From Octopus sinensis (taxonomy: Eukaryota): DNA of 64,000 nucleotides. The position numbers and the translations under genes were made by a program. The stretch is from the NCBI RefSeq assembly GCF_006345805.1, contig NC_042998.1, positions 78,368,001 through 78,432,000 of the forward strand, given 5' to 3'. The notes under the pieces are model-generated. The model was not told where the DNA came from. It saw only the letters and a program-made list of their open reading frames with translations, and searched no databases. Below, piece by piece: positions 45,623 through 48,600 of the stretch; position 1 is the first letter of the stretch, and each line of letters opens with the position of its first letter.

Positions 45623-48600
45623 TGTTTCTTTATTAGCCACACAGGGCTGCACACAGATAGAACAAATTACAAGGTAGAGCTTTTCTTTTGAAGGTTTAAA
45701 AAAAAAAAAAATATTAAAATAAAAAATAAAATAAAATAAAAAAGGGGGGGTCGATCAAAAGGGATCGTAAAAGGAGAGAAAGAGGACAAAAGGGGGGGGG
45801 TTAAAAAAAAGGGGGAGAGGAAAAAAAAATTGATCAATAGGGATCGTTATCACAGAAATGTCAATATGAAGTGTAAAGGGGAGGACAGGTGAGGTTTACC
45901 CGTGGAAAGAAAAGCCTACGGAAAAGACCACGGTAACCTCGGTCAATGAAGTCACATGTTATATTTCTTCTTTTTTTTTTTGCAAATAAGCAACTCTCTG
46001 TATTAATTTTTACGGTTCATAGAATCATAGTCAAGGTGGCTTCGTCATTCATACGTGCCATCCTTGCTACATTCACCCATCTTTTTTTAAAACATTCACT
46101 AGACAAAACTTGCCTCTCTACTCTCACTTTTTTCTTCAAGTGATACTTGAAGAAGTTGATGAGAGATTGACCAGAGAGGAAAGTGTTTGTCTCTAATCCT
46201 TTCAGACGCGTCCACCAGATACATTCTTTCGCCATAGCCACAAGTATGATAAAAATAGCTCTTCCTTCCCGTTTGAAGGAAGGAGGCGTGACGATATTAA
46301 CGATAGACTCGGCTGATAAACCGACACGTCCCACACGTGACAGCAGTCGTTCGACATAAGCCCACAGGTGGGAATTGCTGGACACTGCACGATTGCGTGC
46401 AGAGCGGTTTCGTCGCTCTGCCCGCATCTCGGGCAGGTCGGCCCCGTGTTTCTCGAGCCATGCCTATAGAGCTTATCCCGAACGGGTAGCGCTTCTCGGT
46501 AGCACCGCCAGGCCAGGGATCTCTGGAAGTTGTCCATAGGTCCCGGGCCGAAAGTCGTTTGAAACAGGCGGGTCAGGTATTCCTCGTCGACGCCCAGGTT
46601 TGCCCCGAGCTCGTCGTCGTACCTCCCCTCCACTAATCCCCTATAGAATGCTTTGGTTGTGTTGAAGTCACTCAAGGTCGACCCGGGACGGCAGAGTTGC
46701 TTGAGAGCAACGCGACACTCGCGGTGCCATTCGCCCTTCTTCGGCCTCTTTTTGATCCACGACTGTAGTTCGGTCATGGAGACGAGTTGCGGGAATGCGT
46801 GCCTCACAAACGGCGACCACACCTGTTCACCGTCGTCTACATAGAGCCGGAGATGTCGCAGTCTCAGCGCGTGTCTGCGCATCATCAACCACGGCATGCC
46901 CAGCCCTCCTTTTAACGGGTGTTGACAGCAAATGGATCGCCTGACCATCGGGACGCATCCTTTCCACAAGAAGCGGAAGAGGATGCGTTCTAGTTTGGTG
47001 ATGGTAGGGTCGGGACAAGGTACGACGGTCAGGCGGTAGTAGATGATGGACGCGATGTACGCGTTCACCACCTCCGCCCGACCTTTTAGGGACAGTTTCC
47101 TCTCGGCCCATTGCTGGGCGAGAGTGACCACCCTACTCGTTATCTCGTTCCAGTTCTTCTCCATTTGGAGGTCCGGACCGAACCAGACCCCGAGCAACTC
47201 AACCGGGCCGTCTGTCCAGCGTCCCACGACGGAGGTACTGGTGGACGGCATGGGCTTGCTTCTCCAGGTGCCGAGCCGCAAGCCCACTGACTTTTCCCGG
47301 TTGATTTTTGCTCCTGTCACCGCTTCGTAGTCTTTCAGTGTCTCGCCGACCCGCTCGATGTGCTCGTGGCTTGACACTATGACGGTGACGTCGTCCGCGT
47401 ATGCAGACACGCTCGTCCCGCATCCTAATTCTCGCGGGATGCCCCTCAGAGTCGCCAGCTTCCGCAGTAGTGGCTCAAGAGTCAATACGTATAGAAGCGC
47501 CGAGAGGGGGCATCCCTGACGGACCGAACGTGCAATGTCGAAGGGTCTCGATAGATGTCCATTTACGCGAATTACCGAACGGATGCCTCTGTACAAGGCA
47601 GCTATCCAGCCGCGGAAGACGGGACCGAAACCAGCCGCTCTCAGGACTGCCTCCAAGTATCGATGGTCTACCCTATCAAAGGCTTTCGATTGATCCAAGT
47701 TGATCAGGGCCCCACCATGCCAGGTTCGTTAACTACCCTGTCTATGATGTAGCGCATCAGATGGAGGTTGTCATGGATGCTCCGGCCCGGCACGGCGCAC
47801 GTTTGTGCGTTGTCGACCAGTTTCTCCATGACAAGCGCCAACCTCTTGGCTAACACCTTTGTCAAAATTTTCAGGTCTGCATTGAGCAGAGTGATTGGCC
47901 TAAAGTTATCTATAATGTTTCCCTTGTTTGGATCTTTCTTCAGCAGAGTTACAGCTCCTCGACTCACAAAACCGGGTATGCTCCCGTTTTGCTGCCAGTT
48001 GCAGTATGCCGCTGCCAAGACGTCTCCAAACAAGTCTGGCATACAATAGTAAAATTCGTAGGGTAGACCATCCAAACCCGGTGATTTGTCCCTCGAGCAT
48101 TCTGCCATCGCTTCCCGCACTTCCGCCGCCGTGATGGCACCTTCGCAGCACCCTGCCTTTCTTGTCGAGAGTCGTGGCAGGCTATGTAGGTAGGCACTGA
48201 AGTCTACCCTACGTTCTTGCCCTCCACTCGTCCCGAACAGTCGGGCAAAATGCTGCTGAAAGGCCTCACACATTTTACTTGGCTCGAGCAATTCGCGCCC
48301 CTGTTCATCTACCAGTGACCGAATGGTGGCTTTGTTGCCCTGTTGCGCCTCTGCCACCCGGGCCTCTCTCGCGGCTCCAACACCTTCGTTCCTTAGAGCA
48401 CGCATCCTAGCTCTGACAGCACATCCTTCGTGTTTGGCGTTGAAGTGTTGGTCGAGGGCCAACCTCGCCGCCAAAACGTCGGATGCGATGCCGCTTCTAA
48501 TTGCCTCTTCTAGCTTCTTAACTAGCTCACCCTCTACTCTATTTCTAACTATGGCTAGTGCTTTGCTGTACCTAATCGCTTCTGCTTTTACTGCTCTCTT

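Follow-up and report, generated by a model that had tools for sequence, protein, structure and literature searches.

Among short interspersed elements (SINEs) and long interspersed elements (LINEs), the sharing of a 3' tail that contains a conserved stem-loop is well documented for the L2, CR1 and RTE clades, and L1-clade elements are the textbook 'relaxed' LINEs, which recognise poly(A). In the UnaL2/UnaSINE1 pair of the eel and in ZfL2 of zebrafish, the common 3' tail carries a stem-loop that is recognised by the LINE protein (Kajikawa & Okada 2002; PMC4176376). Stringent pairs involving the L1 clade have been described for LINE1-1_ZM with maize and sorghum SINEs and for L1-1_CR with SINEX-3_CR (Ohshima 2012, PMC3472496; PMC3747384), L1-clade shared-tail partners being reported for just three plant and algal SINEs (PMC3747384). 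Here we analyse a stretch of 64,000 nucleotides from Octopus sinensis (contig NC_042998.1, positions 78,368,001 to 78,432,000; hereafter the window), in which a LINE copy of the L1 superfamily and copies of a SINE, SINE B, end in the same hairpin-bearing tail. The most probable explanation is a partnership of the stringent type between a tRNA-derived SINE and an L1-superfamily, likely Tx1-type, LINE. Tail sharing is a known kind of parasitism of LINEs by SINEs, rarely documented for L1/Tx1-type LINEs in animals.

As in UnaL2/UnaSINE1 and ZfL2, the octopod elements have a shared tail, a short conserved stem-loop and short terminal repeats instead of poly(A). They differ from these L2-clade elements, for which recognition was shown experimentally, in that the octopod LINE belongs to the L1 superfamily, its loop and stem sequences are unrelated and recognition is predicted from sequence. 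With the plant and algal pairs they have in common an L1-clade LINE, a conserved 3' stem-loop also present in the SINEs and compensatory changes in the stem; those pairs end in poly(A), whereas the octopod pair is animal, lacks poly(A) and carries microsatellite-type end repeats. The pairs in maize, sorghum and Chlamydomonas (PMC3472496) also qualify the statement of a first-pass annotation of this DNA that L1-clade partners usually need only poly(A). In crocodilians, SINEU has been linked to Tx1-Mar through the common insertion target Mariner-N4_AMi (Kojima 2015, PMC4494074); SINEU is poly(A)-tailed, and for SINEU-1 no LINE was found to match in its 3' sequence (PMC4494074). Both cases propose that a LINE of the Tx1 clade, putatively so in the octopod, mobilises an animal SINE, but the SINEU link is based on the target and the octopod link on the shared 3' tail. 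Microsatellite-specific Tx1 elements comprise Kibi in (TC)n, Koshi in (TTC)n and crocodilian Tx1 in (TTCC)n/(TTTC)n (Kojima & Fujiwara 2004, as cited in PMC4494074). Like Kibi and Koshi, the octopus LINE copy is flanked on both sides by a microsatellite, (TATC)n, and a related LINE (L002) and the tail-2 SINEs of the window end in (ATT)n; unlike theirs, the octopod target preference is putative, being suggested by a single copy of the LINE and a few of the SINE. Finally, tRNA-derived octopus SINEs were described as OR1, OR2 and OK (Ohshima & Okada 1994), OR2 being listed as a CORE-SINE (cited in PMC4758252), and the main octopus SINEs are annotated as tRNA-Core and tRNA-Deu (PMC8967140). Like OR1, OR2 and OK, SINE B is an octopus SINE of high abundance, in which a tRNA-like head and a CORE-like body are putative, as is its likeness to OR2. 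A literature search, with Repbase and Dfam entries outside its scope, returned no paper naming a partner LINE for the octopus SINEs, and in the literature searched L1-clade tail sharing was reported in plants and algae only.

Read in its sense orientation (minus strand of the window), the LINE ends in ...CCTTGTAATTTGTTCTATCTGTGTGCAGCCCTGTGTGGCTAATAAAGAAACATA, followed by (TCTA)n, and the consensus of one SINE tail type, tail-1, ends in ...CCTTGTTTGTCCTCTCTGTGTTTAGCCCCTTGTGGGTAGTAAAGAAATAG. Smith-Waterman alignment of the LINE end with SINE tail-1, represented by six copies, gave 34 ungapped identities over 42 positions and a score of 26, against a chance level of 7.5 on average (standard deviation 1.3, maximum 16); none of 5000 dinucleotide-preserving shuffles reached 26. 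In a scan of tiles covering both strands of the whole window, from which the SINE copies had been masked, the LINE end scored highest and the runner-up reached 16. The alignment runs in the same orientation in both elements and extends to the terminus of each. A covariance model of the tail module matched the LINE at 45620-45658 (E=5e-4), and within the window all its matches fell at the 3' ends of SINE copies or of the LINE. The first-pass annotation, which had proposed this tail sharing, had reached 34 of 42 by hand, and the LINE and SINE strings that it quoted lie in the window where it had placed them; the CAAGG that it saw after a 3-nt gap is the CCTTG block visible by eye when the sense strings are compared. 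Its interval for the shared feature, 45623-45682, does contain the feature, but the LINE tail proper occupies 45625-45674 on the minus strand, and the adjoining (GATA)n repeat occupies 45120-45622. Searches of Rfam returned no family in the window, the LINE 3' untranslated region (3'UTR) or the SINE.

Comparison with its relatives shows the LINE 3'UTR to include the tail. In the window this region, about 345 nt with T-rich and C-rich runs (45675..46019, minus), leads directly into the tail. L003, an 82%-identical LINE from a different European Nucleotide Archive (ENA) sample, is collinear with it over the whole 3'UTR and into about 25 nt of the tail, where the contig ends. The 3'UTR of L002 (76% DNA identity) ends in ...TTTCCGGGCCCTTGTGGCCAATAAAAGAAATC(ATT)n, its hairpin-bearing end reading ...GGGCCCTTGTGGCCAATAAAAGAAATC(ATT)n, and the LINE at the Argonauta hians locus L001 ends in ...CTGTGTCGGCCCTTGTGGCTAATAAAGAAATCTAT, also given as ...CGGCCCTTGTGGCTAATAAAGAAATCTAT. 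The hairpin terminates the 3'UTRs of related LINEs from Argonauta hians, from a Joint Genome Institute (JGI) contig and from marine samples, the last comprising relatives at 43-54% amino acid identity. Among these distant LINEs the stem-CU[U/C/A]GU-stem was present in L006, L007, L009, L010 and the tandem arrays of a metagenome-assembled genome (MAG) labelled 'Arenicella', and the module lies about 600-750 nt past the ORF2 stop where the distance could be read (L006, L007, L010 and array copies). In the L008 lineage the module was not seen within the DNA stretch examined, and the end of L004 carries a degenerate, uninformative version (...TCTTGTGGCCAATCAACACAC). No SINE body stands beside the tail at the window LINE, L001, L002 or L003; this, together with the collinearity of L003, led us to reject a reading of the LINE tail as a fragment of a neighbouring SINE. 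Nor did a search for the octopod SINE in the four loci L006-L009 find any copy. Since the module is present in LINEs of 43-54% identity and the octopod SINE is absent from L006-L009, the LINE is likely the donor. Scans of metagenome data added no further case: the DNA pattern gave one match, dismissed as chance because it lies inside a long bacterial open reading frame (ORF; by eye of the efflux-pump type), and the protein pattern returned no further octopod LINE or SINE ends.

The window and the Argonauta hians locus L001 both hold the LINE and the SINE together. Within 10 kb of Argonauta DNA we found three homologous SINE copies and two elements with different bodies, all ending in ...GGCCCTTGTGGC[T/A/C]A.[T/C]A[G/A]AGAAATCTAT. 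The tail is thus common to three Argonauta SINE families with different bodies. It matches that of the Argonauta LINE over about 60 nt, with 32 of 34 positions identical for one family, and the LINE and the SINEs both end in GAAATCTAT. Tail sharing spans two genera and several SINE families, and in both elements the shared sequence is terminal. In the window all SINE tail types (tail-1, tail-2a and tail-2b) have the form stem-CTTGT-stem followed by an A-rich block, tail-2a reading ...CCCCAAAATTTCAGGCCTTGTGCCTATAATAGAAAGGA(ATT)n and tail-2b ...GGCTGCCCTTGTGGCAAAATTTGAAACT(ATT)n; the (ATT)n terminus of the tail-2 copies is that of LINE L002. In short, different LINE lineages and, in two genera, different SINE families have conserved the tail. 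The first-pass proposal is supported on several counts: the sharing exceeds chance, the tail lies within the LINE 3'UTR and the module recurs in a second octopod genus.

At the centre of the module lies a hairpin, AGCC-CUGUGU-GGCU in the window LINE (45635..45648, minus; sequence, minimum-free-energy fold and covariation of the homologous hairpin), immediately followed by an AATAAAG motif at 45628..45634. Its SINE tail-1 counterpart is GCCC-CTTGT-GGGT; as had been described, both hairpins stand directly 5' of AATAAAG or AGTAAAG. Across LINE lineages the hairpin has a stem of 3-5 bp and a CU[U/C/A]GU loop, and the stems vary by lineage while the loop stays constant. The arms are AGCC/GGCT in the window LINE, GGCC/GGCC in L002, GGCC/GGCT in the Argonauta LINE and SINEs, GCCC/GGGT in SINE tail-1, AGGC/GCCT in tail-2a, TGCC/GGCA in tail-2b, GGC/GCC in L006 and L007, TGGGC/GCTCA in L009, TGAC/GTCA in L010 (a Tara Oceans contig) and AAGGC/GCCTT in the tandem LINE arrays of the 'Arenicella' MAG contigs. 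Over 26 aligned tails, 4 of which had been chosen by a scan that required a stem, 82.7% of cells could pair, compared to 61.9% after shuffling; the covariation score was 0.497 compared to 0.179 for the shuffles, none of 500 reaching the observed value, and slid controls gave at most 0.225. Two stem pairs show flips between C-G and G-C. These compensatory changes support the hairpin proposed by the first-pass annotation. RNAalifold recovered the same helix in two independent alignments, and the hairpin is present in the minimum-free-energy structure of each of five tails folded singly. Deeper LINE lineages carry a second hairpin 3' of the first, with AAAUAAAG after it, and its stems are fully compensated: CUGUGUA/UACACAG, CUAUGUA/UACAUAG, CUUUGUA/UACAAAG, CAUUGUA/UACAAUG and CCUGUA/UACAGG. 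Folding also suggested a longer helix around the first hairpin (UUCU/AGAA or UUUC/GAAA), on which covariation is uninformative because both arms are conserved.

The class of the LINE was examined through its proteins. Pfam finds RVT_1 and zf-RVT in its reading frames, and the nearest relatives of its reverse transcriptase (RT) frame are cephalopod proteins, including those from Argonauta hians (66% identity) and Acanthosepion pharaonis; others are proteins of ENA and JGI assemblies, at up to 85% identity. Longer relatives also contain a PF03372 endonuclease. For a close relative, P0003, the top solved homologue was human L1 ORF2p (E=7e-43, from fingers to thumb), with R2 proteins at 1e-22. In L007, a 46%-identical relative, the endonuclease, the linker and the start of the RT are collinear with residues 10-569 of L1 ORF2p, and the search of L007 for solved homologues returned no R1- or TRAS-type endonuclease match. 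These protein comparisons support placing the window LINE in the L1 superfamily. Within it, Tx1 elements are told by an ORF1 with a CCHC zinc knuckle rather than an L1-type ORF1. The window copy is 5'-truncated, and its relative L006 has an upstream ORF of 401 amino acids that matches zf-CCHC (E=4e-5), with no L1-type ORF1 domain. In octopus and gastropod genome annotations Tx1 is the sole L1-superfamily group (PMC13282606, PMC8967140, PMC11203168); these published mollusc annotations and the single-microsatellite setting of the copy point to the Tx1 clade. A profile search of 1.84 billion representatives retrieved many ORF2 proteins of about 1150-1300 amino acids; cluster look-ups and a second homologue search for Tx1-labelled relatives gave none, and for that reason the clade label is kept as putative. 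Of the original Tx1/L1-clade call, then, the superfamily stands and the narrower label is provisional.

The target setting is seen in a small sample, one copy with (TATC)n on both flanks and relatives in head-to-tail arrays. Of these, L013-L066 lie in a bin named 'MAG: uncultured Arenicella sp.' in GTDB (CAXXMW01), in which LINEs of 43-47% protein identity occur on 17 contigs (contig_2 to contig_18), head to tail and about 6.4-6.9 kb apart where several loci share a contig. These contigs are eukaryotic DNA binned as bacterial, and proteins of the same broad LINE group also occur in MAGs labelled Herbaspirillum (P0004) and Sedimenticola (P0130). L006 (ENA ctg11195c, 1-8169) is arranged in tandem, the set of a 401-amino-acid ORF, a 395-amino-acid ORF, endonuclease and RT restarting about 1.7 kb past the ORF2 stop, and in L001 a second LINE fragment consisting of 3'UTR only (about 6417-6653) follows the end of the first LINE (about 6287). 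Both arrangements suggest insertion of the LINE beside its own tail.

Several other explanations of the shared tail deserve to be weighed. That two AT-rich, low-complexity ends resemble each other by chance might be suggested by their A/T-richness and by the AATAAA-like strings in both, but the shuffle test refutes it (0 of 5000), as does the Argonauta tail, where the match recurs in a second genus at higher identity; the match is moreover terminal and in register in both elements, and we regard coincidence as practically eliminated. A reversed direction, in which this LINE copy gained a SINE 3' fragment by adjacent insertion or template switching, is very improbable. The window LINE is indeed a single decayed copy within a microsatellite, and SINE copies in the window do stack head to tail; on the other side, the LINE tail has no adjoining SINE body, the L003 3'UTR runs collinearly into the tail, and in LINEs of 43-54% amino acid identity the hairpin occupies the same place in the 3'UTR, with no octopod SINE found in L006-L009, the four loci searched.

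A subtler alternative accepts common descent of the tail and assigns the hairpin and AAUAAA to 3'-end processing, termination or stability, the SINE being moved by another LINE or in a relaxed manner. The LINE hairpin does lie directly 5' of a canonical AAUAAA and is thermodynamically unremarkable, and the window LINE and SINE tail-1 differ in their terminal repeats. What speaks against it is the fate of the motifs: almost every LINE tail sampled retains AATAAA, against only about 3 of 19 SINE tails, whereas the hairpin and a GAAAT block persist in the SINE tails, which points to selection in the SINEs for the hairpin rather than for the poly(A) signal. This retention in LINEs and decay in SINEs fits a transfer from LINE to SINE, and is the pattern expected if a LINE transcribed by RNA polymerase II needs a poly(A) signal and a SINE transcribed by RNA polymerase III needs just the recognition element. 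In addition, a poly(A) tail is absent from both the LINE and the SINE, and the occurrence of the same module in independent SINE families is the usual signature of a recognition tail. We therefore hold the processing explanation to be distinctly unlikely. Alternatively, the partnership could be real and the LINE could come from another L1-superfamily or L1-like lineage, in line with the searches for named relatives, none of which returned one labelled Tx1. Against this stand the mollusc annotations in which Tx1 is the sole L1-superfamily group (PMC13282606, PMC8967140, PMC11203168), the CCHC-knuckle, non-L1-type ORF1 of L006 and the position of the copy inside a microsatellite, like those of the Tx1 elements Kibi and Koshi (PMC4494074), and such a lineage seems unlikely, if a little less easily dismissed.

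In the stringent partnership that we favour, the LINE RNA would end in a hairpin with a 4-bp stem and a CUUGU-type loop, directly after which come AAUAAAGAAAU and a short repeat at the terminus. This LINE 3' module would have been taken over by a tRNA-derived, CORE-like SINE, whose RNA polymerase III transcript would then have its 3' hairpin in common with the LINE RNA. The LINE ORF2 protein would bind the SINE hairpin in trans, and target-primed reverse transcription, starting at the short terminal repeat, would copy the SINE into the genome. From the sequence pattern, recognition of the hairpin by ORF2 protein and movement of the SINE by this clade of L1-superfamily LINEs seem plausible. Some points weigh against such a partnership. 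Mobilisation in trans is itself a candidate step. A better-matching partner may exist genome-wide among the RTE, CR1 or Dong-R4 clades of octopod LINEs. The stem has just 4 bp, and the folding energies of single sequences equal those of shuffles (z from 0 to -1.2); the thermodynamic argument was dropped for this reason, and covariation is relied on instead. Tail identity between the window LINE and SINE tail-1 is only 81%, and the LINEs sampled reach at most about 85% identity to tail-1, a ceiling which implies that the actual partner family has not yet been seen. Lastly, the LINE ends in (TATC)n, whereas the tail-1 SINE copies carry no such repeat.

The window has a base composition of about 36% GC, is AT-rich and is dense in microsatellites. 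The LINE copy (45626..48975, minus), delimited by reading frames, Pfam, relatives and the solved homologue, is 5'-truncated, frameshifted and dead. It contains, from 5' to 3', the end of the endonuclease domain, the RT, a C-terminal Cys-His domain, the 3'UTR and the tail, its reading frame being split in three (48975-47707, 47728-46205 and 46463-46020) by frameshifts near 47700 and 46300. This broken copy is not the source itself. It is embedded in one (TATC)n microsatellite, with 44 units upstream of its truncated 5' end (48976..49150) and about 125 units adjoining its 3' end, where the 45120..45622 repeat reads (GATA)n on the plus strand and (TATC)n in the LINE sense (both from Tandem Repeats Finder). 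The coding region (46001-48000) has 54% GC in 36% GC surroundings, a strong contrast for an old, frameshifted copy. In the 3'UTR at 45676-45830 (minus) there are T13, C7-C9 and T-rich repeats of 17-19 nt that are missing in L003 and look like secondary expansions.

SINE B, with a consensus of 232 nt, accounts for 18 copies or fragments in the window (2954 bp, 4.6%). A run of ARAGORN over the SINE-rich region gave no tRNA. The consensus contains a B-box-like GAGTTCAAATTCC, and the SINE body may resemble the CORE domain of MIR and OR2. Tail-1 copies lie on the minus strand: the one used for comparison in the first-pass annotation at 25542..25770 (module 25540-25578; 95% identity to the consensus, model E=4e-8) and, by consensus match and covariance model, a second at 56977..57198, a head-to-tail dimer at 34350..34759 (34529-34759 plus a 5'-truncated 34350-34527) and a head-to-tail trimer at 24186..24751. 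The trimer consists of tail-1 units at 24522-24751 and 24304-24521 and a 5'-truncated, tail-2-ended unit at 24186-24304 (module 24136-24174). In the trimer and the dimer the downstream units are 5'-truncated, and both loci have the common junction ...GAAATAG/GTATTTCGTCT (the slash marks the boundary), which suggests that the SINE either has a dimeric subfamily or inserts at its own 3' end guided by microhomology. On the plus strand, the covariance model identified two tail-2a copies at 27498..27932 (modules 27673-27711 and 27895-27932), ending in ...TTTCAGGCCTTGTNCC.ATAATAGAAAGGA(ATT)n, and a tail-2b copy at 3520..3708, ending in ...GGCTGCCCTTGTGGCAAAATTTGAAACT(ATT)n; the consensus match and the model together gave copies with a tail-2a module at 4067..4259 and 30598..30790 (module 30752-30790). 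A clean target-site duplication of 12 bp, CTTTTATACACT, brackets another copy with a tail-2a module, at 35446..35622 (minus). Several tail-2 copies (3520-3760, 26659-26860 and 27498-27720) lie between stretches of (ATT)n or (TAG)n, a setting that suggests insertion into microsatellites. A distinct SINE-like element at about 7000-7160 (plus) has an unrelated tail, ...GGCCGCAGTCAAATGACTGAAACAAGTAAAAG(TA)n.

SINEs make up about 12% of the Octopus vulgaris genome. In octopus genomes no other class of repeats is larger, and the SINE expansion is octopod-specific (PMC8967140, PMC13282606). The tail match described here provides a concrete candidate for the LINE that moved the octopod SINEs. Its hairpin is small, its loop hardly varies and its stems covary freely, features that are convenient for binding and retrotransposition assays. 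Tentatively, an animal clade of the L1/Tx1 type, with a stringent CUNGU-loop hairpin and AAUAAA, and not RTE or CR1, may drive the octopod SINE expansion, and the two elements may be the first documented shared-tail pair of the L1 superfamily in animals. If true, stringent recognition would be widespread, perhaps ancestral, in the L1 superfamily, and Ohshima's proposal would extend from plants to animals.

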